Assembly (NCBI RefSeq): GCF_000002075.1
Contig: NW_004797505.1
Location: forward strand, 702,309 to 760,471
Source of the DNA: Aplysia californica
Taxonomy: Eukaryota
DNA length: 58,163 nucleotides
Reading direction: 5' to 3'
Position 1 is the stretch's first letter; each line of letters opens with the position of its first letter. The notes below the pieces were generated by a model. It was given only the letters and a program-made list of their open reading frames with translations, had not been told where the DNA came from and ran no database searches. Positions 1-57,225 of the stretch are shown piece by piece. The translations under genes and the position numbers were made by a program.

Positions 1-510
1 TAATGTCGACAATGAAAGAGGGCACACATTGGAGGGGCTTGGCTTGTACAGGACTGCCTTAGTGAGACAAGTACTTTTGACAATAACACCATGGGTAGTC
101 ACTGGTTATTGGTGTGATTTGGGCGGGATAGTAAACAATTAAATCTCACAAACACACGTAGAGACCCTAGTGATGTCTATTAAGTTTTTATTAGTTATGT
201 ACAACAGAGGAAAGTATAACCATTTATGTGGGCTTTGGTACTCGGAGATCACTCACCGACACCCTCATTACACCCTTAGATCATTGTCTTTTACTTATTT
301 CGTCTAATTGAAGAAAGATTACAACTGTATATTTTTTTCCAGGATCAAAGGACAAAAAGCAATAACTAAGCTTAGTAGGCCTAGTGGCCTCGCTCATTAT
401 CCGCAGAGTGTAAGGCAGATTGTCATCTGATGATCTCAAATAAATGAGATGAACTGAAGCTAATGTGTACTGTGAATTAACACAACGAGACGTTTACGAC
501 TGTCAGCGTG

Positions 511-591
511 TATATAAAGACGGGAACTTGGACAGTGGAGAAGATATTCTTGTCCTAGACGGAACCCAGTACCCGTAAATCTCATAAACAG
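511..591 (+). promoter_or_regulatory. Putative TATA box and short non-coding first exon of the Kazal gene
   Basis: TATATAAAG at 511-519, CAG|GTGAGG donor at 591/592; the ATG-bearing exon at 2392 starts at an acceptor only 4 nt before the ATG, so an upstream non-coding exon is needed. Linking this exon to that gene is inference. Confidence 0.45.
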
Positions 592-612
592 GTGAGGCTG
601 ATCATTTTAGCA

Positions 613-957
613 GAGGCATGTTTGGCGCAAATGTATTTCTGTTTTGAGCATTTTCTTTCTTTTTTTTTTTTCTTTCTTTCTTCGTTTTCTGCAAAATATT
701 ATGTACGCCTCCTGCAAACGTAAACCCCGACTTTCTTTCTTTTCTTTTTTTTTGTATCTTAACATGTCGATGCTTCTGCTCTCCATTTACCGATTAGAGA
801 CTCGTGTGTTCACGTGCCTTTCATTTCACTACTACTGCTACCCGGCATTTCAACTACTCAAACCCATCATTTGTAGCTGGCTCATTGAGTTTGAGTGGTG
901 CTGATCAGGCACTTTTTGGAATGCCTCGCATCTTGACTTGCCAATAAAACTCTAGTA
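613..957 (+). mobile_element. 345-bp insertion flanked by a 15-bp direct repeat (possible truncated non-LTR retro-insertion)
   Basis: CTGATCATTTTAGCA at 598-612 and 958-972; AATAAA at 943-948 near the right end. Confidence 0.4.
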
Positions 958-2593: not shown

Positions 2594-3141
2594 GTGAGAG
2601 CAATAGCGTCTTTGTTCATCAATAATCAATATCCCCAAATCAAAAGAGTGGAACAGNNNNNNNNNNNNNNNNNNNNNNNNNNNNNNNNNNNNNNNNNNNN
2701 NNNNNNNNNNNNNNNNNNNNNNNNNNNNNNNNNNNNNNNNNNNNNNNNNNNNNNNNNNNNNNNNNNNNNNNNNNNNNNNNNNNNNNNNNNNNNNNNNNNN
2801 NNNNNNNNNNNTGTCATTTGGAGACCTTTCGAGATAGCTCAAATGTAGACCACACGGGCGACAGGGAAGTACCGTATATGTTGTTTTTTTCTTTCTTTTT
2901 TTCTTTTTGTTTGTTTTTTCAAAGGTGAAAACGGTCAAGTCTATAATTTCATTCAGCAACCAACCCTAAAATAATATTGTGAATCATAAATAACTACACT
3001 TAGTTTGTAAACGGGCGTTCGAACATCCTTTACCCCAACCACAACCCCATCCCACCACGGCTTCGCCACTCATTTTCTTACCTAAGGAAGATGACTGGTC
3101 CACTCTGTACTAATCGTTATTTTCTCAATGTTCATCCACAG

Positions 3142-3444
3142 ATTGTGTCCAAACGAGACTGCTGTCAGCGGCCAATAACCTCTGAATTCCATTACGTATG
3201 TGGATCTGACGGTGAAGTGTACATGAACCCTATGGGCATGGAAATCGCAGCTTGTGAAAAGAGAGACTATATCAAGTCCGTGCCTCTCTCCAACTGCCCA
3301 AATATCCATCGCCCTCCTGGCACTCTCGATGGCCCTGGCATTGTCCCTGTCCCTCGCCCCATGCCAATGCCTATGCCTGGCCCTGGCCCTATCCCTATTC
3401 CTGCTCCTGAACTTCTCCCATGGGAAGGAATTGTCCTGCACTAG
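3142..3444 (+). CDS. Kazal-type inhibitor, coding exon 2 (end of domain 1, atypical domain 2, Pro-rich tail)
   Basis: Acceptor ccacag|ATT, phase 0; VCGSDGEVYMN Kazal motif; TAG at 3442-3444; spliced product 166 aa (a gap at 2657-2811 lies in the intron). Confidence 0.85.
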   Translation: MVSKRDCCQRPITSEFHYVCGSDGEVYMNPMGMEIAACEKRDYIKSVPLSNCPNIHRPPGTLDGPGIVPVPRPMPMPMPGPGPIPIPAPELLPWEGIVLH

Positions 3445-3470: not shown

Positions 3471-4330
3471 GTTCCAGAAGCGTCCAGAAATGAATGTCTC
3501 ATGGGTTTTTTGTTCAAACCCACCTTGTCAAAAAGAATGTCTGAATGAAACAAACAGTAGCTTTAATTCAGCATGCGATTCTCAGCGTTTCACGTAACTA
3601 AGCTACATAGGTATGCAATATATCCACTCTCAAACATGATGAAACATGTATGTTTATCTGCAACCTTAAAAGGACTTTATGTCCTTCTCCGAAAGTACAG
3701 AGCCAAGTGATGAGGGCTTGAAAACACCACAAACAATAGTACGTTTGATGGTGTGATAATGGAGAGGGCAGGTGTATTTGTATACTTTTTGGTAAAGTCT
3801 GCATTTTTGTCTTTTTTTAGATTCTACGCTGAAAACTCTCTGAGAAACATGTAGGCCTACTTAGACGGAGTTCACATGCTATTTGTTGTAGAAACTCTTG
3901 GAATTCAAATGTTCGTCTGCTGAATGACTAGCAAACCAATAAATTACAGTTTGATAACTGTTTTTCTCCTGCTCAACACAGTTTACTTAATTTAGAATGC
4001 ATCCAACTTCATCGCTGCACGTAAAGGCCAAGCCAAATTGTGTGGGATTTAGTCCACCGTGATAAAATATAGTTCTACAAACAGGAATCGACTTCACGTC
4101 CTTCGAGCAAAAAAATNNNNNNNNNNNNNNNNNNNNNNNNNNNNNNNNNNNNNNNNNNNNNNNNNNNNNNNNNNNNNNNNNNNNNNNNNNNNNNNNNNNN
4201 NNNNNNNNNNNNNNNNNNNNNNNNNNNNNNNNNNNNNNNNNNNNNNNNNNNNNNNNNNNNNNNNNNNNNNNNNNNNNNNNNNNNNNNNNNNNNNNNNNNN
4301 NNNNNNNNNNNNNNNNNNNNNNNNNNNNNN

Positions 4331-6579
4331 CAACAATGGGGGCACACCAGTCTGTTGGCTCAGAGACTGGCTCAATAACTTCTTGCTCCACCATCTTCTC
4401 AAGCTTTTCTTTCCCTTTTTCTTTCAGTGGCAGGGGGTAGTCGACGAGGAACTGCAACAGAAAACGGTTTTGCTTCTTGATCCAGTGTGATCTTGTAGGG
4501 CTTGTTTATCTTTCCTAACCCCGTAAATAACTCTGCATATTCCGAAGGTATACTTTGTTTCTTCACCTCGTTCACTCTCTCCAAGAGTTTCAAAGCTTCT
4601 ATAGCTGGTCTACCTAACAGAGGCTCATTCAGGTTTGTGACGACATACAAATCCTGTTCTGAAGATGTATTTCTGGTAGCCAATGTAGCCCTGACTACTC
4701 CTTTTACCTGTAGTTCCTGGTGTCCTGCTCCAAATAAATTCTTCTCTGTTTTCTTTATTAGCGGTGAGTTTTTCTTGAAATATCTGTCCGGTATCACCGT
4801 GACGTCTGCACCAGTATCCACTCTATACTTAACTGGCTTTCCTATTGTAGTTATTTGTGCGTGCCACAAGTCATCGTTGCTTTGCACGGCCCTGACACCA
4901 TACTCGTTTTCCAGCTGTAGTGTTCCCAGGAAAATTGTTTCAACTTGTCTTACCAACTTCTTGTCTTTGTTTCTACAAGCTGTGGAGAAGTGTCCTCTCT
5001 TTTTGCATGTGTAGCATTCCGCATGTTTGGCAGGACATTCTTGTTTATCGTGTGGACCTCTTCCACATCTGTGACATTTTTTACCTATGTTTTCTTTTTT
5101 TTGAATTTTTGCTTGGGGCCCTGACCTTGACCTTGACTTTGACCTTGCCTGTAAAACTTTCCTTTCTGTAACCTGTTTACTTCTGAAACTTCGTTTCCAG
5201 TACTTTGGCTCATTGTATGCGATTGTGTCCTAGATGACTCATATGCTCGTCCTATATCTAGACACTTTGTTAGGGTGAGATTTTTGTCTTCCAAAAACTT
5301 TTCTCTTAAGCTTTCTTCTCGCACTCCTATCCCCACCTGATCTCTTATTAAGCGGTCTTGCAACTGTGTGTCTCCGAAGTTGCAGGACTTGGCTAGCTGA
5401 CGAAGTTGTGCAATGTAGGCCTCTATTGTTTCGTCTTGTTTTTGTTTCCTCATGTGAAACTTGTGAGACTCGTAGGCTTCATGTTTCTTTCCTATGCAAA
5501 AGTCGTCAAAAGCTTGTATGACGCTTTGGAGATTTTTCTTATCTGCCTCGTCCTCGAAGTGGAAACCTTCGAAAATGTCTACAGCATCTTCCCCAATCGT
5601 CGCTAGAAACACTGCACATTGGAAATCTTCTTCTTCCTTGTTTAATCTGGTGGCGATCGCATAATTTTCGAAGTTTCTCTTAAACTTTTTCCACCCTTGT
5701 GCTAGGTTTGTGCCATCTGTTACGTTTAATTTTGATGGAAGGGGTACGTTGGCTGTGTATTGCTTCTGCTGGTTTTCCCTGTTATGTTGTGCCATTTCTG
5801 TTCACTTGTTGTGGAACTAGAAATCCAGAATAGATCTACTCAAATAAAAGACTCTAAGTCTAGAAGTCTAGAATCTCCAGACCCAAACAAACAAACAAGT
5901 CACAGTTCCAACTCAACACTGTTCATAGTTCAAAACATCTAGATTCTAGTTAATCCAGGCCTATTACCACATCTAGATAATCTACTTCTATCCAGATCTC
6001 TAGTTTCTAGCTCCAGAATCCAGATCTAGATCTACATCCAAAATCCTTCCCGTTTTCAAACATTTAACTGTCTAAACCTAACTAGTCTAGACCTCTACTC
6101 TCACAGAGCACTGTTCTTGATAGATAAACTCTAGCACTTCATTGAATTTGGGTGTTTTCTTGAAGTAGTTGGCTGTTCAGTAGCCACTTCTGACACCATG
6201 TAAAGTTACCTGGCGGTCCGATGAGTCGGGTCTGTCAGGGGGGGTCCCTTCCAAGATAAGTGTTGCCTCGTCGTGGTCCTGAGTTCGACTGAATACCTCA
6301 GTGAGTCTCTCAGACGATGTCTCTCTTTTTCGCGCCGGGCTCTTGACGTCATCCAAGGGCGTGCCATCCCCTAATTATCTTGTCCCCACAGTAAAGATAA
6401 GAGTCATGTCCCTTGACATCACATGGTTGCAAGCAGCAGGTGAGTTGCTCTGGGGTGAATCTTCGGTGTTGCCGCTCGCTGCTCGAGTGACAGGCTTTTG
6501 ACTTGCAAGTCTACTGCCGCACATAGAAAGGCTGGCTGTATTTTGTCTTGGCATCATAAACTGCCGTGGGCTCATTACA
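4331..6579 (-). mobile_element. Ty3/Gypsy (Mag-like) LTR retrotransposon 1, 5' part only; frameshifted gag-protease-RT start, ends at an assembly gap
   Basis: Gag (5085-5795: WKKFKRNFENY, IRDQ..G), twin CCHC knuckles, protease VDTGADV (4399-4956), RT start VIEPVSEPTDWCAPIV; PBS TGGTGTCAGAAGTGG at 6184-6198; LTR TGTAA..TTACA 6199-6579 (right limit inferred from the terminal inverted repeat). Confidence 0.9.
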
Positions 6580-9500: not shown

Positions 9501-10980
9501 GCCAGAGACGAAAAATAAAACAGAACCCCCCCCCCCCCCCCCAAAAAAAGAGAAAAATACAGCTTAAAAAAAAAAATCCCCCAAAAATACCGCTAAAAAA
9601 AGGGAGACACACAGGTTTGAACCCTGGTTAAAAAGTTTTACATCTAGTCAAAAAAAAGTCTGACGCCTTTACCACTAGGCTAGAACGCCACACGTCATTT
9701 CATGTCATGTTAACATTTATATATAGTAGGCCTACATAGATCTATGCACTTGATAAAATTGAACGTTCTTTCATTCAACTTCTGTCAGCATATACACCGA
9801 GTTTGTTTGTTTGCTTGTTTAGTCTACTGGGTAGAAGAGCTCTAATGCAACAATTATAGATCATAGATAAAGTAATTTACTTATTTGTATCAGTTTCCTT
9901 TCACATTTCTTCCAAAATAGAGTTGTTTTCAAATGGTGCGGCCATCGTGATCATTCCGCGGACGATGTGTGCACACCGCAAATCGAGCCTCCGCTAGAGG
10001 CAACGGAGTTCGCGTTTTCAATGAAAATTTTAAAACTTTCCCATTCGTACATTAATGTACATTTTGAGTATTTTAGATACGATGATTTTCTCTATCAACT
10101 GCATTTCATTGTGTTTCTTTTGCTTTTATTTCCTTGCGATTTCTCAAATCTGCCAGACTAATTCATATTCTTCTTCGAAAGAGAGCTTCAAAACACACTG
10201 CAGCGCCATCTGAAGCAAAGAGCAGACTTCCGGCGGACACTTTTTTGGCTGAGTGGACCATCTTGCTATGTACTATCTTTCGAGAAGTGAACGGAATCGA
10301 TACCGGGAGCCAGCTCTAGAATTATCTACACAAAACCTCGTGTTTGCTATTTTATAACGAACACTCGGATTCAACGAGATTTTAGGTCAGGCCCGGCGAC
10401 CTCGTTGAACCCGAGTTCCACTGTAATACTTTTTTGTTCGAGGCATTTCAATAAATGGTCTGGAGGTAACATTTTACGTGGAATAGCCGGCCACGGATTT
10501 TGGACAACTCTTATGGGTTCCTTATTATTTCCCACAACATCATGAGTTTATTAACAAAGTTCCACCATTTGATTTATTTGTCAACATTATGTGTTTATTT
10601 ACAAGGTTCCAGCATTTGTTTTTATTTCCGACAAGCTGACAGATCCCCAAAACACACAAACAATAAGTGAGAACTGCGTAGCTCAGAATGATTGACGCTA
10701 AATAGAATTACATTGTACTTGTACTTGATTAATTTTTTAAAATATATAAAAACAAGATGCAGATTCTGAAGTTGTGCTTTGTCCAGTTCATCGTGTTAGA
10801 AAAATGAGATCATTCACATTGTTGTATAAATATTTCATTAATATTTATAATTACATTACAATTGCATGTATAATAGATATATTAGATTCTAGATCTATAT
10901 TTACAATTACCTCACACTGTCACACTCACATCCTTTCTGCATGCGAAACATTTTCCAAAGGAACAACTCCGGTGTCCAGA

Positions 10981-11926: not shown

Positions 11927-12937
11927 CTGTCCCCGTTGGATTATTGTTATGCGATTGTGCGGCCGCGTTTTTTCGCGTAATTCTGCAACTTTTGAATAAT
12001 TTTGGATTCCCCGCGTTCTTTCACGTTTTAAAATATTTTTTTTCCACAAAACAAATTATTTAACGCCTCGCAATGTGACTAAAGGGGAGTAATCACCGTA
12101 ATAAAAGTTGGTTATTTCCCTTGTTAAAAGCATGTTCAATTTTTCAATTGATCTACATGTAAAAAGTTGTTCTCATGTCTACTGGTGTTTCATGTTTGAC
12201 AGGTAGAGCTGGGCGAAGAGTCGATTCTGACAGGTAGAGCTGGGCGAAGAGTCGATTCCGGAACCGATTCCCACGATTAATGCTGTTATGGAAGAAGTTA
12301 CTTTAATCACTAAAATCGTTTTTTCTTAAAGAATTTATATTTGAAAAATAAAAGTTGATGCTTTGTCGTGTTTAGAAATCAAGGTTTTCCTAAATCTTGA
12401 ACATGTTAAGAAATCAAGGTTTTCCTACTGGAAGAAATCACATGATTAGAGAGTAAGTAATTCAAGTAATTGGGTTCGGAGTCGATTCCTACGATTCCTA
12501 ACTTTCAATAAACGGGAACCAAGCCGCCCAGCACTATTGACAGGTGTGTCTGGCTTTAGTGATGTGCCAGCATCAGAGGTCCAAATTGTTTATGTTTTTT
12601 GTTGTTTTTTTTACATTTTTCTTACCTCTAGATCTATAGATATAGATCTACAGCTGAAAGTTACAGAAATTATAAAAAAATTATTATCATTTTTGGGGTT
12701 TGGTTTTTTTTTCTGACAGGTGCGTATTGTTTTCTTTCCAAATACACAACAAATTACTGATACTGATATGTTCTGTTTTCAAGTTTTCTGTACACAAAAC
12801 ATGAAAATTCTTGTTGAAAAAAAAAAGAGAAAAAGATGTCGCGAATGGTGTTACAGTGACTTGCATAATTTTTGCATCATTTTGCTTTTTTCATGCAAAA
12901 TTTGGCAATCTACATTTGCATAATTCTACGGGGACAG
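11927..12937. mobile_element. Non-autonomous TIR DNA transposon (~1 kb), 8-bp TSD
   Basis: Termini CTGTCCCCGTtggATTAT / ATAATtctACGGGGACAG; flanks GTGCTAGG (11919-11926) and GTGTTAGG (12938-12945), an 8-nt duplication relative to the array phase. Confidence 0.75.
12204..12536. mobile_element. hAT-like MITE nested in the previous element
   Basis: TIR TAGAGCTGGGCG / CGCCCAGCACTA; perfect 8-bp TSD TTGACAGG (12196-12203, 12537-12544); internal CGATTCC repeats. Confidence 0.8.
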
Positions 12938-14790: not shown

Positions 14791-14998
14791 CAATACTGCT
14801 TCAATATAAATACATATAAAATTCAATTACATGTAGTTCCTCATAAAATGAAACTAGAAATACAAAAATGAAAAGAATTCAAAAGTAGCAAAAGTAGAGT
14901 CAAGGTTGTTAATGCAAGGCATTATAAATAGCATTGAACAGGGACTATTATTAGAACAGTCTTTCAACAAGAATCATTATATTGGGTTCAGGACCAGT

Positions 14999-15760: not shown

Positions 15761-16850
15761 AACTGAGAAAAAAAATGCAAGGACAAGGCAAGACCAGTAG
15801 ACAGAACCATAAACAACAACCACAACAACGTACATGTAGAGTGTTTGTACAGCGTCTACTCCAGAGAGCGCATAGCTTCAGCTACTTCACAGTTACAGAA
15901 ATTTAAATGCAAGAACAAATGTATACATGAACAATACTGTACCTGTGAAAAATTAATCTTTGCTCAAATAAACACACAGAACAAATCCACTCCCACCCCA
16001 CACACACTTTCTCATCACTCATGCAAGCATTATATACATCAAATCTGAGGGAGCATATTCAAATGCATAGTGTCATATACAATATATAATATATATATAA
16101 TATATATACAAAATGTAAAGACTGTACAAAATGCCACCTGTAACAAAAGTATGTATAGAGATCGATGCATATTGTGAACATGAAGCTAGTCAGTTAGAAA
16201 TTCTTTGCCTGTTTCCACAAGTGACCCCCCCCCCCCCACTTCCCTATGTACATGTATACATATATATGTATATCTCTATGCTTCTGGGTTTAGGGGGGGG
16301 GGGGGTGGTTAAAACAGATGGGCCAAGGTGGACAAAGGATCTTTCAGATAATTTTTCCCCCCCCTCCTTCCCCGGGAGCTCTTGAGATGATGATCATCAC
16401 TGAGATGACACATATATGATGACATATATGATGACACATATGTAGTTGATGAAGGAACTCCTGAACGTCTGGTCTCCGTCAGGCGTTCATCACAGGCCAC
16501 ACGGAGTTATGCTAGAGTCAAAAACACCTGTTCTTTTGCCATGCTCTTCATGAAAAAGGGTGTCCATCTCTTCCGAACGAACATAGAGATATTTGCAGAC
16601 ATAGGAGGTAGGGGTTGCCTGGTGTCTGCTCAACTAAAATTAGTGAGAAAATTGAAAATGGCCTCCAAAGTTTAACGACTCTAAAGCTGTACTGTCCTAG
16701 GAAACGGCATACTGTACCCTACAATGATACATAGGGCCCTGTAGCCTACAAAGATACATCTAGCCTATAGATATGTCGGCGTTGTCAACACTCAAGGAGC
16801 TGTAGTAATAAGAAAGTCATTCTTCAACCAGACATTAATTGATTTATTAT

Positions 16851-19774: not shown

Positions 19775-19846
19775 CTGGAAAACACAGTCAGAGTATAGTT
19801 ATAGGACATTCACACACACATACACAGTCAAAGCATGAGTAAAGTC

Positions 19847-36481: not shown

Positions 36482-36981
36482 GTAAGTGAGAATCAAAATC
36501 AAACACTTTTCCGGCGATTTTGTAGTTTCGTTCGTTAAAGTCAAGCAGGGGGGTTTCAGGGGGGTTTGCCCTCCTGACCTAAAAAAAATATGGAGGTGGG
36601 GGGTTCAGGGGGGCATGCCCCCCCTGAATTTTATCCTAATTTGATGTCAGTTAGGTTGCATCCCTGCTCTTTGTGTAGCCTAATTCAAATAGTATTTGGT
36701 CTTCATGACTTCTGGATTTCTTCTCTGAATGTAAACAAATGGATCATGGACTTTAACGAACGGAACTACAAGATCACCACTTTTTCTACTTCTAGAATCT
36801 AGATCTGATCTAGAGCAAGACATTTAGTCTAGATCTACATCTCGATATAGCCTATGTACATCTCGACTCAACTTCTTTGCTTCAGCTTCAATGCTTGTGG
36901 CTTGTTGTGGCTGTCAACTGCTATTTATGCCAGTTTTTCTATGGCTTTGTTGTACCCAAGTATCAGTAGAGTTAAAAATAA

Positions 36982-38516: not shown

Positions 38517-40246
38517 TAAAAATAATGCCTGAACATTGTTATTTTATAGACTGTCGTTATTCTCATCCAGGTTGAAAATAAAAATATAATATTATTCTCA
38601 CCCGGTCTGAGAATGCAGTGGATTCCGGGTGTTGAGAACGGGTAGGCCTACATGTTGGGTAATAGGATGATAGAAAATAATTTGTGAAAACTATAACTAG
38701 AGAGTACCCAGGGCTCCCCTTTTCAGGCCAACTTAAGAGGTTCCTTCACCCTTCTGTTTACTATTTGAAGGGGTATTTAAGCCCTTGCTTTAGAGACTTA
38801 CAGGATAAAAGTCAATATCTCATAATTTTAAAGTAATTACAAGATTTTTTGCTTTGCAAACATTTAACTCACACGCTCATTCACACAGACACACATAGAA
38901 TGACCATGACTATGGTTGAATGCTAACGATTTTAATTAACTTGAGAAATAAATGAGTAATATTGACTAGAATTAGAGTTTTGTCCTTTTGCAGGGAGGAA
39001 AAGTGGTGGTGGTGGTGGTTGAGCAGTTGGGTCTATCTATCAAAAATAAAATAAAGTTGGCAAACCAAATGGGGTCAACTCCACTATAATACTCCAAGAA
39101 AAATAGACCTGTCACTCTATGAAATCTAAAAGTCGAGATCTCTGTGGGGAAAAAAATTGGGACTTGGTGAAAAAAATCGGGATCAATGACAAATCACCTA
39201 GGTCACTGCCAAGCTAACTTTAAAAAATTCCAGGGGTGTCCAATATTATATCCTGTATATTCCCTCTGCGTGGTGTATGTGTGTGTGGTGTATGTGTGTG
39301 TGGTGTATGTGTGTGTGTGTGAGTACGCGCGTGCCTGTGTGTGTTTTATCTTTTTTTAAAATCCTGAAGTATCATGTCAAGGTCTCCTAGGCCAAGTGTT
39401 TTACACACCCCTTACCCCCCACCTCCCCCCCCCTCGAATAAGTTCCGAAAGACGCTTCAACCAGTGTGCATGAACTTAAATTGACCCCGTCAGCAACGGT
39501 CCCCGACACACGTGGAACTCACACGCCGAAGTCATGTCACATGGTGTGAACGAGCGATTGAAACAGTTTTACTGATGACACTTGATGAGGGGCCTGACTA
39601 ACCAAAACTCGGACAAAGCATGTTTTGGTGAAAGTAGATTTTGAGAATGTCTTTAGTCGGAATGCCAAATCAATACCACTTCCAATCCATTATAGTTGAA
39701 ATAACACGTTTGACAACTTTTGGTGAGTCAACTACTAAATTCGACATAGACATTTTGGAAAATATTTCTCCAAGTTTCTGCTGACAAAAAGTTTGACGAG
39801 TGCTTCCCACGACAGAAAAGAAGGCAAGAGTAAGATTTTAGAAAAATACGGCGCAACAGGCGGAACAAAAAATTAAACAAAAAAATCAGGGTACACGCAA
39901 TCAAAATCGTGAAAATCGGGATGCTTGAGATTTAGGGCAGGGATGAGTGGCAGGTTTTGGAAAATAAACTGATTCATTATTCTTCAGAGCCATCCCAGGG
40001 TTCACATTCCAGTCTTTCCACACTTTCGATGGCGGACAATTCATATTTACTAGTGTGTTAAAGCAGGATGGGGGTAATCTCATGGCAGGGGTAAACTCAA
40101 GGGACGACACCGGCAAATGTGAGCAACCAGAATGTGGGCGGAGCTTCTGTGCTGAAGCAAGCCTGTGTTGCCGGAAAATGCGCGCAGCTGATAAGTAGGT
40201 TGACTAGTCGACTTCTTCTGACACAGAAGGGGACTGTGGTGCATGT

Positions 40247-42057
40247 CTGCCGTCGTAAGGGAAAACGATGAATGGTCCTGCGCAGGTAGCGAGGCAAATT
40301 TTTTAGGAGAGGCAAAAATTGTTTTCACTTTATAACTCATCTATTTTTCACTTTTTAAAGCTGTAATTCACCAGATATCTGATTGAGGTGTTCATAAAGC
40401 AGTTTCTAAAGTTTGAATGGTTTAGGTTAAAAAGTAGCAAACTTATTCGACATTCATCGTTCTCCCTTACATTGCGCACCCGCAGGTGAGCCTTGCGATG
40501 TAAGCGAAAATGACGAATGGTACGGTTCGTCGTTCTCTTTTACACTCGTGAACGTTTATGGGTGTAGGCGATGGTCAGTTGTGACGCATTATTGACAATA
40601 ATGACTGTGTTGTGGTTGCTACAAATAAAAATAAGATGTATACAAACTAGTTATTATACGTGTAAAGTTAGGTGTTTGTTATATCCCAACTGTAACTCGG
40701 TAAACGTCCTTCGTTTCCCTTCCTCGCTTGGTTAAATGCTACACAGTCAGTGGACAAATGAGATGTGCACACATTTTCAACAGCTTGATTTAAAACTGTC
40801 CCATTCGGAGCCAAAGTTTGGTCTCCATATTATCTCTCTATTGTATTCTCTTCAGAAGAGTTTTACTTTTATTTTCGCAAATTGCAAAATGTTCCCTGCA
40901 CGACCAAAGGGATCAACAATTTTACAATGTCAATAATACGATCAGATCATTGCAAGGTCAAACTTTCACGTAAGAAATGTAACAATCTGACAAGACTGTT
41001 TCACAAACGCTTTCAGGAGAGGTAATGCGACGCTCTGTATTTAATAAAGGATTCAGTTGATCGGATCGGAAAACATACCACAAAGTAAAGATCGACAAGG
41101 ACACTTTGAATCTGCAAGACATTATTAGACTCGATCGTAACGTCCATCAAATCATAAAAAATCGTAAAGCAAGACTAAGTGTCGCCACAATACGTCCACT
41201 TTTTAAGTTGGACAAAGAAATTTACTCTCATAACGCAGTGTCATTAATTGCTTGGTAATTCTATAATGATGTCGACCAGTGACACGTGCTAGACAAATTG
41301 CAGCACTATAACCATCGTTGGGATTTTGGATGTCAAATGACTGGACAGCAAACTAACATGACGTTAGTCTGTGAACATCTGGCGGACACTAATATGCAGT
41401 GCTAATAAATTTCTCCCTAAATACTTTTTTGACCCTCCCATCCCCACCCCTTTCCCNNNNNNNNNNNNNNNNNNNNNNNNNNNNNNNNNNNNNNNNNNNN
41501 NNNNNNNNNNNNNNNNNNNNNNNNNNNNNNNNNNNNNNNNNNNNNNNNNNNNNNNNCCCTGTTCCCATCCGTTTTCCCCTCTCTCCCGCCTGCTCTTGTC
41601 AATTCACACCTTCAGCATAGGCCTAATACGTGAAGACAGACAGAAAGAAACACTAAGAGATACATTCTTATAAAGTTGGTCAATTCTACTCTGGGGGAGG
41701 GGGTGGTGGTGTGTTTGTTTGCCAAAAAAAACTAGTATGTTTGTACTGACGCAACAGTGACCAATTGTCATTCGTCGCCCATGCCGAATTTGCCCAAACG
41801 GCAGAGACCAGGGGACAATGCCGAACGAGCAGTGATCCTTGACCGATCGACCATTCGTCATTCTCCCTTACACTGAGCTCTGGCTCGGAGCTCGCCAGTG
41901 TACGGGAAAACGACGAACTCTCAATTACGCAACAACGGATTAGGATATGACCAAAAAATTTACACCAAAAGATGCAGAATTAAATACTCTATGAAATATA
42001 TAAACATAACAAAATCGAGAAATTTTGACCATTCGTCGTTTTCCCTTACGACGGCAG
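40247..42057. mobile_element. Non-autonomous TIR element with 4-bp TSD (Sola-like?)
   Basis: ~32-bp TIR CTGCCGTCGTAAGGGAAAACGA(T/C)GAATGGTC; ATGT on both sides (40243-40246, 42058-42061); internal copies of the TIR motif near 40450-40545 and 41850-41920. Confidence 0.75.
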
Positions 42058-42594: not shown

Positions 42595-42845
42595 TATTTT
42601 TTTCTTAATTTTGATTGGCTAAACCATTCAAGAGTAAAATTTTCCATTAGGCCTACGGAACCAATAATAACCATAAATATTTTTTTTCTTAATTTTGATT
42701 GGTTAAACCATTCAAGAGTAAAATTTTCCATTAGGCCTACGGAACCAATAATAACCATAAATATTTTTTTTCTTAATTTTGATTGGTTAAACCATTCAAG
42801 GGTAAAATTTTCCATTAGGCCTATGGAACCAATAATAACCATAAA
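42595..42845. repeat. 84-bp tandem repeat, 3 copies
   Basis: Unit contains TTAATTTTGATTGG.TAAACCATTCAAG..TTAGGCCTA.GGAACCAATAATAACCATAAA. Confidence 0.9.
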
Positions 42846-43107
42846 AGGTGACGCTTTATTTGCTCAAAAGATAAGGTTTTCCCCCGAATCAACAATAGTT
42901 GCTTGAGAGCTGGCCCGCCCGTGAGCGATTTTAGTCACCCTGCGCGCGCTCAGTGGAGAGAGAGAGGGAGACTAGTTTTGTCGCCTGGAGCGCTCAGTGA
43001 CAGGGGGGCCAGATATTCTACATATCGCGGAAACCTTTCAGGATGGTGACCCAGTGGTCAGGAAGTCGTCTTCTAGAAAGTAGATTCTGTATCTCGGGAA
43101 AAAGTGG

Positions 43108-43328
43108 GCTGTCTCAAGAGACAGAATGTATAACTGGGCTGTCTCAAGGAGACAGAATGGTCAACTGTCTCAAGGAGATAGAATGGTCAACTGTCTCAAG
43201 GAGACAGAATGGTCAACTGTCTCAAGGAGACAGAATGGTCAACTGTCCCAAGGAGATGGAATGGTCAACTGTCTCAAGGAGATAGAATGGTCAACAGGGC
43301 TGTCTCAAGAGATAGAATGGTCAACTGG
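43108..43328. repeat. 26-bp minisatellite upstream of exon 2 (repeated at ~44415-44610)
   Basis: Unit CTGTCTCAAGGAGACAGAATGGTCAA. Confidence 0.9.
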
Positions 43329-43425
43329 GCAGAAAGATGTCCTACCACAGGGTTCAGTGATCTGAGCGCAGACTTGGGGTTTGTTTTCGTGTGTGATCTC
43401 TGGAGTTTTGTTTTTCCTTGCCCAG

Positions 43426-43559
43426 GTTCCGTCCGGTGAATGTGAAAGAAATGCTGCATACTGTGCTGGGGGAGAAGTTGACGGGGAAGACGTACAGCTC
43501 CGAGGACACGACGGCCTGGACCAAGGAGATCTCTGAGACCATCAGGGACCGGTTGAAAG
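43426..43559 (+). CDS. TCTEX1D2: TCTEX1D2 exon 2 (copy A)
   Basis: ccttgcccag|G..AAAG|gtcagc; 134 nt, phase 2/1; FRPVNVKEMLHTVLGEKLTGKTYS..WTKEISETIRDRLK. Confidence 0.85.
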
Positions 43560-44706
43560 GTCAGCCAAGTGTTGTCTGGTCCAGCGAGAAACTCTTTAGG
43601 AAACATTTGAGACGGCACACGTCGGTTTTTTGTTCATGTATAACAAAGGGTGCAGTATTTTGGGGTGTTATTCCTTAATCCCTGATTTTTCCTCCATATC
43701 TCTTTGTAAATGTACGTCAGCCCCAACGAGGTTGCAAACAGTCCAAAATCACTTTCAACGAGGTTGCGATAACCAAATAAAAGCATTTAGCGGCCCCAAA
43801 AGCGAAGAATTTTTCTCCTTTCTCTCCATCTCATGCGAAGCATAAGGCCCATCCTCGATTCCTAACATATTGTATTGCTAGATCTAGTGTACCTCCTAAT
43901 AATGGCCCCAAAGCCGAGAGGATGGACGAGGGTTAGCCTACAGTAGAGATGGGAGGGGGTGGGTNNNNNNNNNNNNNNNNNNNNNNNNNNNNNNNNNNNN
44001 NNNNNNNNNNNNNNNNNNNNNNNNNNNNNNNNNNNNNNNNNNNNNNNNNNNNNNNNNNNNNNNNTAAATATTTTTTTTCTTAATTTTGATTGGTTAAACC
44101 ATTCAAGAGTAAAATTTTCCATTAGGCCTACGGAAGCAATAATAACCATAAAAGGTGACGCTTTATTTGTTCAAAAGATAAGGTTTTCCCCCGAATCAAC
44201 AATAGTTGCTTGAGAGCTGGCCCGCCCGTGAGCGATTTTAGTCACCTTGCGCGCGCTCAGTGGAGTGAGAGAGGGAGACTAGTTTTGTCGCCTGGAGCGC
44301 TCAGTGACAGGGGGGCCAGATATTCTGCATATCGCGGAAACCTTTCAAGATGGTGACCCAGTGGTCAGGAAGTCGTCTACTAGAAAGTAGATTCTGTATC
44401 TCGGGAAAAAGTGGGCTGTCTCAAGAGACAGAATGTATAACTGGGCTGTCTCAAGGAGATGGAATGGTCAACTGTCTCAAGGAGATAGAATGGTCAACTG
44501 TTTCAAGGAGATGGAATGGTCAACTGTTTCAAGGAGATGGAATGGTCTACTGTCTCAAGGAGATAGAATGGTCAACAGGGCTGTCTCAAGAGATAGAATG
44601 GTCAACTGGGCAGAAAGACGTCCTACCACAGGGTTCAGTGATCTGAGCGCAGACTTGGGGTTTATTTTCGTGTGTGACCTCTGGAGTTTTGTTTTTCCTT
44701 GCGCAG

Positions 44707-44840
44707 GTTCCGTCCGGTGAATGTGAAAGAAATGCTGCATACTGTGCTGGGGGAGAAGTTGACGGGGAAGACGTACAGCTCCGAGGACACGACGGCCTGG
44801 ACCAAGGAGATCTCCGAGACCATCAGGGACCGGTTGAAAG
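44707..44840 (+). CDS. TCTEX1D2: TCTEX1D2 exon 2 (copy B; probable second haplotype or tandem duplicate)
   Basis: Same peptide as copy A, one synonymous change (TCT/TCC), intact splice sites. Confidence 0.7.
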
Positions 44841-45377
44841 GTCAGCCAAGTGTTGTCTGGTCCAGCGGGAAACTCTTTAGGAAACATTTGAGACGGCACA
44901 CGTCGGTTTTTTGTTCATGTATAACAAAGGGTGCAGTATTTTGGGGGGTTATTCCTTAATCCCTGATTTTTCCTCCATATCTCTTTGTAAATGTACGTCA
45001 GCCCCAACGAGGTTGCAAACAGACCGAAATCGCTTTCAACGAGGTCGCGATAACCAAATAAAAGCATTTAGCGGCCCCAAAAGCGAAGAATTTTTCTCCT
45101 TTGTCTCCCATCTCTGCGAAGCTTAAGGCCCCATCCTCGATTCCTAACATATTGTATTGCTAGATCTAGTGTACCTCCTAATAATGGCCCCAAAGCCGAG
45201 AGGATGGACGAGGGTTAGCCTACAGTAGAGATGGGAGGGGGTGGGTGGGAACACAATGCGGGCTGTGTGAAATTGGATTAACTCTGGAACGAGTAGGTCT
45301 AGATCAAGACCTTTATTTTTTTTCCAATTTTCTTTTCTTCCCTGATCAGAAAATCCAAGCTCCTGCCTTTACTTTTA

Positions 45378-46171
45378 CAGTGGAATCCTGTTATAACGAG
45401 AGGGAGGGACCGGTGCGAAATGTCCATTATAGCAGGATTCTCGTTATAAGGGATCCAGTAATAAATTCAAGGGAAATAGTAAAATAGGCCTAATCTATGA
45501 GTTTGGTGTTCTGTTTATTCCTTATTGTATTTCCCCTGATGATGATTTTGTTCAACATAATCTCTAGGTCTTACTTGATCTAAATTCGAATCAGGTTTCT
45601 TTCTCTAGCACTAGCAATGTTGACAGCTCGGCGTTGGCGATCAGAGAGAAGGGGCTCTGGCTCTAGGCTAACTCGCCCTCTGTGTTGTCCCCCACCCCAC
45701 CACACCCTGTGCTACGTTGTGTCTGCTTGCGCACGTCACACATTCGCTCCATCTATCACAGCATTGTGACCTCTCCATCCCGCACCAGAAAAGTGAGAGG
45801 CACAGTATGCCTAGATAATCTAGACTGGGCTGGCCTATCATGCGATGCGTTCTGCTTGTCTGCGCATTCCACACCCTCCCCACTCATTCGCTCCGGCCTT
45901 CATTGTTGGTTTGCGTTGGCTCTCCCATTCTTTGTTTCGCTGGATCACCAACAACTTTCTCTACTGGCGAGGTTATATGTTTAATTTGTCTGTGCGCTGT
46001 GCACAGCAGCAGCAATATTCCGTTATAACCAACTCACGTGACTGTCTGATTGCGCAATAGCAGTATTTTATTTAAAAAGATAAAGGAGGGGGGGAAAAAT
46101 GGGGTTTTAGAATAGTGGCTTTATAACGGACTTCTCGTTGTTTCAGGACTTGTTATAAGTGGACTCCACTG
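45378..46171. mobile_element. Tc1/mariner(pogo)-type MITE
   Basis: TA|CAGTGGAATCCTGTTATAACGAG ... CTTGTTATAAGTGGACTCCACTG|TA; internal GTTATAA repeats. Confidence 0.8.
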
Positions 46172-46594
46172 TAGTAGATCTAGGCCTAGATGTGAGAGAA
46201 GTGTTCTGGAAAAAAAATTTTTAACAATGCAGAAATGACGGCGAGAACACTGCTCAAACACGTGCACACTGATGTTGTTTGAAAATTTCGTCATCAGGGG
46301 GAACAACTGTTTAAATTACTGGTATTGGTACATTGTTTAATATAATTACTTGTCTCCTTTCTTTTCTTTAGCCTTGGTCACATTCAACGAGAAGTCGGAT
46401 CCAACGAGGACAACAAGCCGGTCCCGGCAACCTCGATGAATGCGACAGCCACTGTATTGTAATTGTTTAGTCCACAAAACTTGGAAGAAATAGATGAAGA
46501 AAATTGGATGATGTGTCCGGAGTGATCCACAGATGGATTTTTTTTGGGGGGGGGCACTCAATACACACACATGCAGTCATGGTTGAGTTCTTCC

Positions 46595-47728: not shown

Positions 47729-48561
47729 GTCCGCCAATAGAATTAACATTTGACATATTCCAGCAGTGTAGCTTATCTATAGGTGTACATGTGGGGGGAC
47801 CATCTACATGTGTACAGGNNNNNNNNNNNNNNNNNNNNNNNNNNNNNNNNNNNNNNNNNNNNNNNNNNNNNNNNNNNNNNNNNNNNNNNNNNNNNNNNNN
47901 NNNNNNNNNNNNNNNNNNNNNNNNNNNNNNNNNNNNNNNNNNNNNNNNNNNNNNNNNNNNNNNNNNNNNNNNNNNNNNNNNNNNNNNNNNNNNNNNNNNN
48001 NNNNNNNNNNNNNNNNNNNNNNNNNNNNNNNNNNNNNNNNNNNNNNNNNNNNNNNNNNNNNNNNNNNNNNNNNNNNNNNNNNNNNNNNNNNNNNNNNNNN
48101 NNNNNNNNNNNNNNNNNNNNNNNNNNNNNNNNNNNNNNNNNNNNNNNNNNNNNNNNNNNNNNNNNNNNNNNNNNNNNNNNNNNNNNNNNNNNNNNNNNNN
48201 NNNNNNNNNNNNNNNNNNNNNNNNNNNNNNNNNNNNNNNNNNNNNNNNNNNNNNNNNNNNNNNNNNNNNNNNNNNNNNNNNNNNNNNNNNNNNNNNNNNN
48301 NNNNNNNNNNNNNNNNNNNNNNNNNNNNNNNNNNNNNNNNNNNNNNNNNNNNNNNNNNNNNNNNNNNNNNNNNNNNNNNNNNNNNNNNNNNNNNNNNNNN
48401 NNNNNNNNNNNNNNNNNNNNNNNNNNNNNNNNNNNNNNNNNNNNNNNNNNNNNNNNNNNNNNNNNNNNNNNNNNNNNNNNNNNNNNNNNNNNNNNNNNNN
48501 NNNNNNNNNNNNNNNNNNNNNNNNNNNNNNNNNNNNNNNNNNNNNNNNNNNNCCCCCCCAG

Positions 48562-49576: not shown

Positions 49577-50120
49577 GGCAGAGACGAGGGGAGCTACGAG
49601 GCATCGACGCATAGACGTAGAGGGGGCTACAGGGAGAAACATACCCACGGAGAAACAGACATACAAGACATGACCTGATGGACAACGTACGAAAGATTTA
49701 GTGTGATGAAGACATCACCTGATTATACAACGGACGTGACGACTGGATGGGAACACCGTGGAAGCCCCCGCCAAACTTGCTGTGGCAATGTCAGATAAAT
49801 GTTTGAAGATTTCTCATCTCATCACTGTCAGAAAGTGCTGCAAGAATTGGGGTGGGGAGGAGCCACTGATGGGAGGGGTGTGATTCAACAGCTTTGATTT
49901 TGTTTTGGTTATCCAGTAACTTTTTCAGGATGGGGGGGGGGGAGAAAATTGCACTCTTTTGATGAATGATTTTTCTTTTCGTGAATTGTTCATAGAAAAA
50001 TGTATATAGATCTATATGTGTGAGAAAATGTGAGAGTGAGTGGAAGTGACTGCGCCATCTCTGGAAAATGCTGGTTTGAGAGTGTTGTGTCTTGGTGTGG
50101 CACATTTCTTAACTTTTTGT

Positions 50121-51149: not shown

Positions 51150-51686
51150 AAAACCAGCAATGTCATTTTTTCTCATATGACTTCACGATAAAAATCGCAA
51201 AAACACTGCAGCACTTTAAAGACTCTGCTCAACATGGGTTTCATGATTACTGCTACAATACATTCATCAATTTGAGGATTGTAAGAAAAAGGTATTCATT
51301 AGGAGAGTCTGACAAATCAGCGCAAGAAGGGTATTGCTCCACTAGGAAAAAAGCAAAGCAATCGTTTTCAACACGCCTCTTGCCCATTCAATGCCTTTTG
51401 TGTGAAAAGACTATCGAATAGACACATGACAGCAAGGGAATCAAGAAAGTTCATAAACTTGCTAAATATGTTACCAAAACAGCTGAAGCCTCTATAAAAG
51501 AAGCTGTAAACAAGAAATCTGACCCAAAACTTCGGGGCCACATTGAACATGTTGTTCTCATTGCCCAAGAGGCATGGTATCATGAACCATGTAGAAAAGC
51601 TTACACACGTAAGGAGGATCGACGTTCACAAGCTTTAACATCTAAATACATGTACTGTTCTGGAGAAGAAAAGGCAGAAGCTGAAG
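51150..51686 (+). pseudogene. Decayed N-terminal fragment of an Academ-like transposase; continues at 56512-56603 after Gypsy 3
   Basis: HGFHDYCYNTFIN and LIAQEAWYHEPCRKAYTRK motifs; the frame resumes as EEEAHSMAFQYVCQFVE when the LTR element is removed. Family call from recalled motifs. Confidence 0.5.
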
Positions 51687-54600: not shown

Positions 54601-56506
54601 GTAATGAAAGTGGTCAGCTTCGCGGAGTCGTCGTCCAGTGCCAACTGCCAAAAGGATGAAGTTGCAACAAGCTTGCTGAACTTGTTGGATCCGCTGAGTT
54701 TGTACAAGATGTCGTCTATGGTGGGCAGCATGAATCGTTCACGCTTCACCGATAGGTTGAGCTTTTTTCTTCAGATTTGTGCAGATTCTAACGCTACCAG
54801 ACCTTTTTCTGACCGGGACCATGGGCGCGTACCAGTCAGTAGGAGGGCTGATCTTCTCAATGACACCTGTGACCTCCATGCGGTCTAGTTCAGCCTTGAC
54901 TTCGTCCACGAGTGGAATGGGAATCCGACGTGCGACGTTAACGGAGTGTGTCTGTGCATCTTCTTTCAAGATGATTTTCACTGGCTCGCAGCGTATAGGT
55001 TTAGGTCCCTCATCGCCGAACACGAGGTTGGCAGAGTCTATTCTGTCTCGAGAAATCAGTCCCAGACGAACTGCGGCGTCACGACTGAGAAGACAGTCGG
55101 TGTCGTCGTCAAGGACGAAAACACAGAACGCAAAGTTGCGATTGTTGTGCTGCGTAGTTGCGATAAATTCTCCCACGCTCCTTATGACTCCACCAGGACT
55201 GCGAAGAACTGCAGATGTTGTTTTCAGCTTTGGACGAGGACTGAGACGGTTGTAGACGGCCTTCGACATTATCGAAACATCGGTCCCTGTGTCTATCTTG
55301 AAGGATGTAGCTCTCCCTCCAAGGTTCAGTGTAACGCGCCATGGTGGCTCGCTAACTTCGCCGAAGTTAACATCGGTAACGACATTACTGTCCACGTCTT
55401 TGTCAACAGCACCTAAAAAGAACGAAGGAGTTTCCGATTCAGTGATTTCGTTGACATCGCGGCTGCTGCTGCGACAGACTGTTGCGAAATGATTGCGCTT
55501 GCCGCATTTTCTGCAAGTTTTCCCACGCGCTGGGCAATTGTTTTGGGCATGACCTCTTCCGCAGTTGCTGCAGTTAGAGAAAGTTGACGGTGATGCATGG
55601 CTGCCTCTGTGTTGTGAGTGTATACCTGTTCTTTGGTCGCCTCTACCCCTGGGATGAGCAGGCGACGAATATCCCCTCTGGCCGTAGCGCACTGCATCTA
55701 CTGTGACTGCTGCACCTAGCTGACGTTGGCTACTGACCTGGCCCTTTACGAGCTCGAAATGGCGTGCTGTTTCGATGGCTGATTTCAAAGTAAGAGTTGC
55801 CTCGAGTTGTAAGCGCTATGACAGTTCATTGTCCAGTACTCCTAGGACGATTCTATCCCTTATGGTTCCATCTCGGTCCTTAAAGTCTGCATGTTCTGAA
55901 AGCTCGTACAGGGCTCTAACATATTCTTCTATTGTCTCCCCACTGTTTTGTGCTCGTGCATGAAACTTTGCTCTTTCGTGGATAAGATTCCGCTTTGGGA
56001 CAAAGTGAGCGTCGAAATTCTCTAAGACAGTGACAAAGTTGTCCCTAGGATCGTTACCTTCGACGGGAGCAGGGAACGTGAACGTGTTAAATATCTGTTC
56101 AGCTTGGCGTCCCATAGCGTAAATTAATTAACTTACCTGAATTGCTCCGATCTCTGCGTTCAGTTTGGTGGCTGTGCGGTATCGTAGCATACGCTGTTGC
56201 CACTCGGGCCACTCGTGAGGTTTGGAAAAATCAAACGGTTCAAGAGGCTTGAAATGAGGCATTCTGACACTTGTGACACGTTATCCACTGACTTCTGACA
56301 CCATGTAATGTTAGTATACACACACGACTGTAAACTGGAGAGACGAACACACACGACACCAAGCAATCTAATAATGAGCCCGGGAGTAGTGTATGACTTT
56401 TTATGTTGATCTCCGAAGTGAGTAACATTAACCAAAAGCCCATAGCATTCGGGGCGCTTACGGGGATTAAGAAAGAGTAAGGTACAATACTGTGACTACC
56501 GTGACA
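51687..56506 (-). mobile_element. Ty3/Gypsy (Mag-like) LTR retrotransposon 3, near full length, frameshifted
   Basis: LTRs 51687-51887 and 56304-56506 (TG..CA); perfect 5-bp TSD TGAAG; PBS TGGTGTCAGAAGT at 56291-56303; PPT at 51888-51898; gag with twin CCHC, protease IDTG, RT FMDD, RNase H DASSYG/YAQIEKE, integrase H-H-C-C and LVTDNGPQF. Confidence 0.96.
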
Positions 56507-56594
56507 TGAAGAAAAAAAGAAAGCTCAAGCTGCAGAGGAAGAAGCCCACTCCATGGCTTTTCAGTACGTCTGTCAGTTTGTGGAAAAACAAAAG

Positions 56595-57225
56595 AATAAA
56601 TAACACATCTAGTGGAGAGGATTTGTAAAAATAGAAACTAACCACAACTAGTGAAGACATTTGGAAATAAAAGAAAATGAAATAAGTAACACATCTCGTG
56701 GAGACGGTTGGTAAAGAAAAAGAAATAAAAATATTTTGGGGAAGTGTTTTCTTCTTTATTTTTTAATTATAAAAAAAAAAAAATACACTGACAGCTAATG
56801 AAGAGTAATGGAGCCAATAGAGCCAGTTTGATTGCAAGGTGTATAGTAAAAAAGCGATGGCATAACATTGTATTCTGTCTTTGTTGTACAGTTCAAGGGA
56901 ACTAATTCATGTTTTATTTTAACCGTATTTAGTAGACTCTTGTAGGCATTGCTGTTTCCCTTTAACGACAACACTCTTCCTGGCTGGGAATATTTTTTTT
57001 TACAACTGTCACCACAAGTAGAAGATGTGTTATTTATTATTTTTTATTATTTGTTTGTTTCCACTGTTTCGGCGAGATGACTAGATGTGTTAGTTATTTA
57101 ATTATTTCGGGGGGGGGGGGGGGGGGGGGTTAACAACTGTCTCCACTAGACTAGATGTGTTACTTTTTAAAGAACAATTTTATATGAACTGTCTCCACTA
57201 TATTAGATCTATGTGTGTTATTTAG
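56595..57225. repeat. Foldback-like region with inverted copies of TAACACATCTAGTGGAGA
   Basis: Forward copies near 56600 and 56690; reverse copies near 57010-57030, 57065-57090, 57140-57160 and 57190-57220. Confidence 0.5.

Follow-up and report, generated by a model that had tools for sequence, protein, structure and literature searches.

Palindromic TA-bounded words in the genome of Aplysia californica as candidate excision scars of TA-targeting transposons

A 58,163-nucleotide stretch of Aplysia californica DNA (C235:702309-760471, referred to as a whole as the window) holds a marked excess of three palindromic words, TAGATCTA, TAGGCCTA and TACATGTA, each of which places a fixed filler (GATC, GGCC or CATG) between two copies of TA. 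We consider it likely that these words are excision scars left by three or more families of TA-targeting transposons of the Tc1/mariner/pogo kind. Insertion at a plain TA accounts for many of the sites, if not for every site in the window, and some occurrences are mere passengers that were copied with repeats or that are native AGATCT codons of Gypsy elements.

Measured against a Markov expectation built from the window's own composition, TAGATCTA occurs 23 times where 0.59 (order 1) or 1.07 (order 3) would be expected, TAGGCCTA 12 times (0.33 and 0.35) and TACATGTA five times (0.89 and 0.73). An order-5 background gives a higher expectation and is invalid, because its 6-mers already hold the scar word. 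Both TAGATCTA and TAGGCCTA rank among the most enriched 8-mers of the window that are not tandem repeats. Among the 16 palindromes of the form TA-xxyy-TA, only the three words and the microsatellite TATATATA are in excess; the remaining ones number zero or one each in the window and lie near expectation in a 171-kb sample counted at fixed places on 20 other contigs. Flanks are mostly unrelated among window sites, the exceptions being duplicated sites and one two-unit array, and about 21 TAGATCTA, nine TAGGCCTA and five TACATGTA contexts are independent. The window also holds 15 seven-letter relatives (TAGGCTA or TAGCCTA) and four nine-letter relatives (TAGA[A/T]TCTA). An earlier note on this DNA, which had proposed such an excess, gave positions that are all exact and counts of at least 20, at least nine and five. 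The excess stands over the order-1 and order-3 backgrounds in the window and over expectation in the sample; missed were TAGATCTA at 28295 and 45161 and TAGGCCTA at 42732, 42816 and 44123.

The excess is genome-wide and not peculiar to the window. The sample contains 37 TAGATCTA, 10 TAGGCCTA and 21 TACATGTA (1.8, 1.0 and 3.5 expected), the density of TAGATCTA in the window being about 1.7 times that of the sample. Across the assembly (927 Mb, 4332 contigs), pattern counts filtered by allowing three of the four letters three places out on each side gave 142,223 TAGATCTA, 33,120 TAGGCCTA and 52,237 TACATGTA, from which we estimate true counts of about 2x10^5, 5x10^4 and 7x10^4. In the sample, the GATC word is present at roughly 1 in 30 CTAG-type sites (about 3%), and the GGCC word at about 0.9% of those of the GTAC type. 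Mean decay, estimated roughly from the excess of one-letter neighbours over intact words in the 226 kb of window and sample pooled, is about 0.06 substitutions per site in the GATC class, 0.10 in the GGCC class and 0.13 in the CATG class.

The polarity of the change is visible where filled sites can be compared with paralogues: empty paralogues read TA and filled copies TA-X-TA, and the TA duplication is thus retained. Site 25150 lies in a non-autonomous host repeat of about 890 bp (24411-25302) with long terminal inverted repeats and a high genome copy number (5116 first-look candidates; copies 82-88% identical), which also holds site 24831. The earlier note had called this repeat a MULE (Mutator-like element); its long terminal inverted repeats are real, it has no transposase open reading frame (ORF), and the label is tentative. 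The comparison drawn from it is sound, in that 25150 is filled and the second window copy (about 38368) reads TA. Genome-wide, the site is a plain TA in 98 of the 100 copies listed (387 paralogous copies in all). Eight copies have at least three letters there; four of these read TA-X-TA, namely TACGTA, TACTTCTA, TAGATCTA (the window copy) and TAGGCTA, and the other four are tandem duplications, which leaves the window copy as the only one with a GATC filler. At site 26090, the paralogue at L020:359-441 (79% identical alignment) reads AAAACTAGGTC, and the window word is +6 at CTAG. Outside the window, a TAGATCTA at L007:4125 splits the conserved NPxENxW motif of a Tc1-like transposase, which reads FNPVDLENIW there and LNPKENLW in L017.

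Several other window sites do not record such an event. The earlier claim that the words are derived +6 insertions at TA holds for 25150, 26090 and the MITE-like sites described below; it fails for 24831, finds no clean +6 at 38035 and draws no usable evidence from the Gypsy sites. All 17 family copies found for site 24831 carry the 14-nt palindrome ACGTAGATCTACGT or CpG-decayed forms of it, with no empty copy among them; this word is inherited with the repeat and marks no event in situ. The paralogue of site 38035 reads TATAAAAATCTA and gives no clean +6. Sites 26430 and 32194 lie in the C-terminal ends of Gypsy integrases, where AGATCT is native Arg-Ser coding. The word at 26430 probably arose by flank substitution, but at both sites this origin is hard to distinguish from a +6 insertion or a codon-pair duplication. 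At 32194, Gypsy 2 encodes CAPRSRSY and Gypsy 3 CAPRSY, the latter reading CCGAGATCTTAC; the difference is explained as well by a +6 at CCTAGG as by a codon-pair duplication, and this pair, once offered as insertion evidence, is uninformative. The description of the scars as frame-preserving applies to the 6-nt form only, since TAGGCTA/TAGCCTA, the 5-nt form, nearly equals TAGGCCTA in abundance. Within the 258 kb of DNA readable letter by letter (window and sample), the indel spectrum of paralogues yielded too few alignments, with only 7 six-nt events.

A family of about 220 bp resembling a miniature inverted-repeat transposable element (MITE) offers a clean natural assay of target choice, since it holds a pair of TAs 4 bp apart (...CTGCTCAG-TA-CC-TA-GTTTTGAG...). 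Gapped patterns run on the whole genome read the letters between two fixed flanks in each copy, and 737 exact copies have a plain TA at both places; the class totals at these sites and the genome-wide flank percentages are hand tallies of the sites listed. At the C-TA-G site, the short variants include 8 intact TAGATCTA, 3 decayed by one letter, TAGAATCTA, TAGATTCTA and three arrays, with zero TAGGCCTA. Relaxing the right flank brings this to about 40 GATC lineages, again without any GGCC: 20 intact, 5 TAGAATCTA, 1 TAGATTCTA, 6 arrays or chains and 9 decayed forms. At the G-TA-C site, which lies 4 bp upstream, the first 100 of 116 variants include 18 TAGGCCTA, about 9 decayed forms, 6 TAGGCTA, 7 TAGCCTA, a single TAGGGCCTA and a single TAGGACCTA, two chains, about 8 members of the CATG class and only 4 TAGATCTA; a relaxed listing gives about 60 TAGGCCTA and 17 TAGGCTA. 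In other words, TAs four bases apart in one repeat collect different words. The 13-24 five-letter forms at the G-TA-C site are too frequent to be decayed six-letter forms, which requires several independent events. A fourth, CpG-bearing class also appears at this site (TACCGGTA in 2 copies, TACGGTA in 3), and would be invisible to k-mer statistics because CpG decays fast.

The same preferences hold across the genome, with C|TA|G as the target of the GATC class, G|TA|C of the GGCC class and A|TA|T of the CATG class. Of the 64 TAGATCTA sites outside arrays that were listed from contig 1, 53% have C at -1, compared with a background of 18% at TA. Among the sites listed genome-wide, TAGGCCTA is preceded by G in 43% and followed by C in 43%, and TACATGTA has A at -1 in 40-47%. 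The relatives keep the flank of their class, TAGGCTA/TAGCCTA having G at 36% and TAGA[A/T]TCTA having C at 55%. They too are enriched in the pooled 226 kb: TAGGCTA/TAGCCTA 39 times where 11 are expected, TAGATATCTA 5 times where 0.2 are expected, and TAGA[A/T]TCTA 10 times where 1.4 are expected, with only 2 nine-letter forms having C/G at the centre.

These features are most readily explained by excision. Insertion of an element would duplicate the target TA; at excision, the non-transferred strand would be cut 2-3 nt within either end of the element, leaving flanks that keep TA and a short 3' overhang, and end joining would fuse the two flanks into a scar. For an element with GGC..GCC ends, a full 3-nt overlap with a mismatch at its centre would yield TAGGCTA or TAGCCTA, and a 2-nt overlap would yield TAGGCCTA. 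For GAT..ATC ends, a 2-nt AT overlap would yield TAGATCTA, a 1-nt join TAGA[A/T]TCTA and a blunt join TAGATATCTA. All three of these predicted products (GATC, GA[A/T]TC and GATATC) occur, and there is no TAGATTA class because the 3-nt overhangs of GAT..ATC ends cannot pair. A 2-nt cut of the Tc1/Tc3 type at CA..TG ends would yield TACATGTA. We infer that the GATC and GGCC fillers are element-end letters, and the overhang lengths are deduced in the same way. That only three of the 16 palindromes are enriched implies fixed donors, and the combination of a fixed filler, a retained TA, class-specific flanks and a series of 3 to 6 letters is as end joining after Tc1/mariner-type excision produces. 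The short scars are heterogeneous in the manner of excision footprints, forming one series of GGC, GCC and GGCC and another of GATC, GA[A/T]TC and GATATC.

Comparable footprints are known from related systems: 2-4 bp in the Tc1/mariner superfamily and 0-3 bp for ZB (PMC7913693), 0-4 bp for the pogo-type Passer (PMC9976928), and 'cag' or 'ctg' between TAs as the canonical footprint of Sleeping Beauty (PMC5224488). Sleeping Beauty and Frog Prince (TA-CAG-TA, TA-CTG-TA) are alike in that TA is duplicated and three end letters are resolved to either strand, and the TAGGCTA/TAGCCTA pair found here is the exact analogue of the cag/ctg pair. Sleeping Beauty differs in its letters (CAG/CTG, here GGC/GCC); moreover, the 4-nt GGCC is commoner here than the 3-nt form, and the source element was not found in 258 kb. 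Passer, of the pogo superfamily, shares the TA target and the short, variable footprints. Tc1 and Tc3 of Caenorhabditis elegans, as well as Minos, leave in-frame scars of 6 bp, made up of TA and 2+2 or 4 end letters. Their +6 at TA matches what we see, TACATGTA is the scar expected of CA..TG ends, and a Tc1-type family with CAGA ends is present. However, their footprints are known from experiments or single loci, whereas here there are 10^4-10^5 per class, which dominate the 8-mer spectrum.

The CATG class has a matching family of living type. This Tc1-type family, TA|CAGACTTCAACATA... (with CAGACTTCAAC... ends), is represented by 677 ends; 81 of the 100 listed are preceded by TA, the upstream sequence being otherwise variable, and A stands before the TA in 56%, compared with the 40-47% at -1 in the scars. 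The ends recur in pairs about 580 bp apart, and a 589-bp MITE copy lies at L007:942-1530. A decayed, transposase-bearing relative with CAGA-type ends occupies L007:3768-5022 (G000:C15:253768-255022). This Tc1-like relic, which also carries the motif-splitting TAGATCTA, lies between two (TAGATC)n arrays that border it.

Candidates for the other two classes were rejected. The GA-ended candidate TA|GAGGTGTTAC (L003) is internal to a longer repeat. TA|GAATTACAAAG (L004) is also internal, the upstream TACCYY being conserved in 4641 ends, and TA|GAGGTTTTACGGCG is the tail side of a very abundant repeat resembling a short interspersed nuclear element (SINE). The possible filled alleles C423, C405 and C460 at the two hot TAs continue into unique sequence. 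The hot CTAG site has a single filled allele, a 251-bp insert between duplicated TAs (C8:1466153-1466403), which begins GATAAAATAAG, finishes CTAAGATC and has no inverted ends; its left end is part of a 23-copy repeat with variable truncation, and it is probably a retroposed fragment. A de novo search for termini on the 258 kb gave nothing usable, and a Pfam scan of the 129 ORFs of at least 110 amino acids in window and sample found two Tc1-like relics only, with no pogo, mariner or MULE transposase.

Several observations weigh against the excision reading. Of the families with GA..TC, GG..CC and CA..TG ends that the earlier note had predicted, only the last was found, TA-flanked: no TA-flanked GAT..ATC or GGC..GCC element occurs in the 258 kb, and neither hot site showed one as a filled allele. 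Downstream of TAGATC or TAGGCC, only TA recurs as a continuation in 226 kb, and we saw no pair of alleles of which one holds the element and the other the scar. These missing GATC and GGCC elements are the main gap in the reading; they amount to absence of evidence only, because families below a few thousand copies are missed with 226 kb. To our knowledge, GA and GG termini are unusual among described Tc1/mariner/pogo elements. The TAGGCCTA fill at the MITE-like G-TA-C site is about 7% of copies, eightfold the value of about 0.9% at GTAC generally, to which a wider target context or a subfamily inheriting one event may contribute. Finally, the T-TA-C site of the SINE-like repeat (GGTGT-TA-CAAGAG) has no TAGATCTA among 100 variants listed, from which it follows that TA alone is insufficient and that the flank matters. 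The commonest +6 there are exact tandem duplications, which may be subfamily markers or reflect a separate +6 process; per 100 variants, TAGTGTTA accounts for about 12, TACAAGTA for about 9 and TACAATTA for 5. Footprint-like forms at this site are TACATGTA and TACTCGTA (two each), TACTGTTA (three), and TACTGTA, TACATA and TAGGCCAA (one each).

The same gap invites an account that needs no element. A host or domesticated nuclease or transposase acting at TA sites, or templated repair, could fill C-TA-G and G-TA-C with a fixed 3-4 nt. The GATC and GGCC scars would then be the work of element-free or domesticated enzymes, each with its own word (at CTAG or GTAC) and with a preference for open germline chromatin such as gene 5' flanks. 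Arguing for this, the two commonest classes are those without a source element in the 258 kb or at the hot sites, the fill of CTAG sites is about 3%, and scars cluster in a gene 5' flank. Counter to this, a constant GATC or GGC(C) is not known to be added by any repair pathway, the observed series of variants matches the prediction for paired element-end overhangs, the third class does have a matching transposon family, and the space searched for elements is tiny. We regard the account as unlikely. If it were true, the scars, roughly 3x10^5 in number, would preserve a fossil map of the activity and would represent a new class of sequence-specific insertional mutagenesis.

Alternatively, the words could be mostly inherited, a few insertions or native palindromes in master copies having been spread by amplification, duplication and slippage. 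Inheritance contributes in places: the 24831 word is common to all copies found, an 84-bp repeat and a segmental duplication copy 5-6 of the window sites, AGATCT is native in the Gypsy integrase, arrays are numerous genome-wide, and the high fill at one MITE-like site could be of this kind. As a general explanation it is improbable. Flanks are unrelated at most window and sample sites, and four sites lie in single-copy DNA; plain TA is the rule at 25150 and in the 737 MITE-like copies; the flank preference of each class holds across 100 unrelated genome sites per class; and copying leaves the targeting of TA alone unexplained.

A generic mutation that makes palindromes at TA, by snap-back or hairpin synthesis or by P-nucleotide footprints of the hAT type, seems to us very improbable. 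Each of the three words is a perfect palindrome, and at some sites (24831, 32194 and 50007) the palindrome continues into the flanks; such extension follows from a palindromic target preference. However, 13 of the 16 TA-xxyy-TA palindromes are unenriched, and the non-palindromic TAGGCTA, TAGCCTA and TAGAATCTA belong to the same classes. The footprints of hAT, Transib and V(D)J P nucleotides look similarly palindromic, but they copy flanking host letters between duplications of 5-8 bp, whereas the filler here is constant, does not copy the flanks and lies within a 2-bp TA duplication; the inverted flank complement within an 8-bp duplication that a hAT-type hairpin would leave is not seen.

The least probable explanation, to which we give almost no weight, is an artefact of sequencing or assembly, for instance letters from adapters or junctions. 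In its favour are the draft state of the gapped assembly and the likeness of AGATCT to the ends of adapters. Against it, the sites recur in contigs from other samples and studies, in one case with a single-nucleotide polymorphism inside the word, and the words decay by substitution in paralogues and respect their target flanks. The evidence comes from contigs of public runs of four samples aligned to window positions 23000-27000. A contig of run X1, possibly the assembly's own sample, matches the single-copy stretch 25282-26582, with its four TAGATCTA, without gaps. Contigs of run X5, from a different study, match it piecewise, with G>C inside the word at 25908. A contig of run X10 differs from window 25330-26004 by 6 gap letters and nothing else, and one of run X7 from window 25433-26582 by 22 gap letters and 3 substitutions. 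The words are thus not an assembly artefact, because contigs from other studies carry the same letters in 25282-26582. The contigs of one run break at 26092-26095 and 26435-26444, adjoining two TAGATCTA. The window contains 11 N runs, five of which (35717-35967, 37196-37735, 41457-41556, 43965-44064 and 47819-48552) are additional to those in the earlier program-made list; every word keeps at least 59 nt from the nearest assembly gap, and no comparison spans a gap.

Returning to the excision reading, scars would bring new TAs and would accumulate in hot regions, one example being the 5' flank of the putative sulfotransferase gene described below, and chains would result. The chaining through shared TAs described earlier is real at 28289 and 46175, and occurs also at 9727-9744 and 10883-10897. 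About 10% of TAGGCCTA genome-wide abut a GATC unit, where chance would give less than 1%, and window site 46175 is such a chain. Mixed GATC/GGCC chains do not come about by slippage; regional hot spots or re-use of scar TAs can make them. Pure (TAGATC)n arrays, by contrast, are far commoner than repeated independent insertions could account for (genome-wide, 29,165 places hold the two-unit array TAGATCTAGATCTA), and we suspect that slippage, acting afterwards, probably extends them. This recalls the birth of microsatellites from insertions, in that (TAGATC)n starts from a unit already holding 1.33 repeats; it differs in that the seed is a class-specific insertion at TA and that mixed GATC/GGCC chains exist. 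Nor do the units behave as those of a simple hexanucleotide microsatellite generated by slippage, as single units stand at plain TAs. At C389:612000-747000, about 10 copies of one MITE locus share a complex chain (TAGAATCTAGACCTAGAATCTACATCTA, in full or shortened form); their spread over 135 kb points to a large tandem or segmental amplification.

Excision footprints are textbook material at single loci. We found no description of such mass accumulation in the literature searched, including literature on the word itself and on Aplysia transposon footprints. The kind of event is known, while its scale, class structure and role in seeding microsatellites appear to be new. If the excision reading is true, footprints are a major mutational force in this genome: they dominate its 8-mer spectrum, seed a palindromic hexanucleotide microsatellite, pile up in a gene 5' flank and add two codons on landing in coding sequence, for which the Tc1 transposase and perhaps Gypsy are examples. 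Scar words would then provide a record, open to counting, of how active cut-and-paste elements have been and of which targets and regions they favoured, families now lost included. Work on molluscs that searches for motifs, models indels or studies microsatellites should also take these words into account.

The individual TAGATCTA sites of the window differ in context. The word at 5831-5838 has unique flanks, and that at 6027-6034 is preceded by ATC, a decayed neighbour unit. At 9727-9744, a chain of TAGGCCTA-CA-TAGATCTA forms three TA-X-TA units with common TAs, and at 10883-10897 TAGATTCTA, a variant one letter longer, stands beside the canonical form. A cluster reading TAGATCTA-TAGATA-TAGATCTA occupies 12629-12650, and the word at 23986-23993 has C at -1. 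Within the repeat discussed above lie 24831-24838, inside the inherited palindrome, and 25150-25157, where the +6 has a C-TA-C context. Of the words beyond it, 25906-25913 (present in other individuals' contigs, one run having the substitution noted above) and 26536-26543 (confirmed by contigs of two runs) are assigned to the gene 5' flank, 26090-26097 is the +6 at CTAG, and 26430-26437 lies in the Gypsy integrase fragment. The two-unit array TAGATCTAGATCTA at 28289-28302 includes the TAGATCTA at 28295. Further along are the Gypsy 2 integrase site (32194-32201), a cluster of TAGAATCTAGATCTGATCTAGAG and, further on, TAGATCTA (36793-36837), and the site in repeat copy 2 (38035-38042). The word at 43879-43886, at CTAG, predates a local segmental duplication and is duplicated at 45161-45168. 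The mixed chain TAGATC-TAGGCC-TAGATG at 46175-46194 has a decayed last unit; the word at 50007-50014 sits within ATATAGATCTATAT, and the last is at 57204-57211.

Among the TAGGCCTA sites, 376-383 has G at -1 and 3852-3859 a G-TA-C target. Another G-TA-C target is that at 38643-38656, where the word is followed by a decayed CATG unit (TACATGTT). The word at 41618-41625 is untouched by a gap 62 nt away, and two more lie at 28511-28518 and 45485-45492. The segmental duplication, of about 1.2 kb, pairs 42758-43964 with 44065-45246 at 95% identity and straddles an assembly gap. Inside it, in the region 42597-45246, lies an 84-bp tandem repeat of three units, and this arrangement multiplies one TAGGCCTA and one TAGATCTA: each unit in 42648-42823 carries one TAGGCCTA (42648, 42732 and 42816), and the TAGGCCTA at 44123-44130 belongs to a fourth copy of the unit in the segmental duplicate. 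These four words have one origin and were spread by duplication. Four TACATGTA sites lie at 12154-12161, 14828-14835, 15831-15838 and 51647-51654; the fifth, at 16249-16256, adjoins a simple repeat rich in TA and CA, and a chance origin is plausible for it.

The SINE-like repeat (...GGTTTTACGGCGCTCGCAACTGCATAAGGTC...GAAGATTAGAGGTGTTACAAGAGAG...) was seen in 8 of 20 random 10-kb samples (L003, L004, L006, L009, L010, L017, L018 and L019) and also at window position 35406, and probably ranks with the commonest repeats of the genome.

On the minus strand, two ORFs match Sulfotransfer_2. That at 25319-25837 covers profile positions 2-39 and has single-copy depth; its match is weak (E 6e-4, 20.4 bits, under the 22-bit Pfam cut-off). 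The other, at 19153-19809, covers the C-terminal profile positions 140-252 (E 1e-7). We read them as exons of one host carbohydrate sulfotransferase gene, 25319-25837 being the first and 19153-19809 a later one, and the putative gene would have an intron of about 5.5 kb that holds repeats. An exact-match protein search with the sulfotransferase exon found no entry. Upstream of the first ORF, at distances of 70-720 bp, single-copy DNA holds the four TAGATCTA of 25906-26543. As the earlier note had observed of host coding exons, neither Sulfotransfer_2 ORF contains a word, and there is none inside a weak Kazal-domain ORF on the plus strand (3004-3441).

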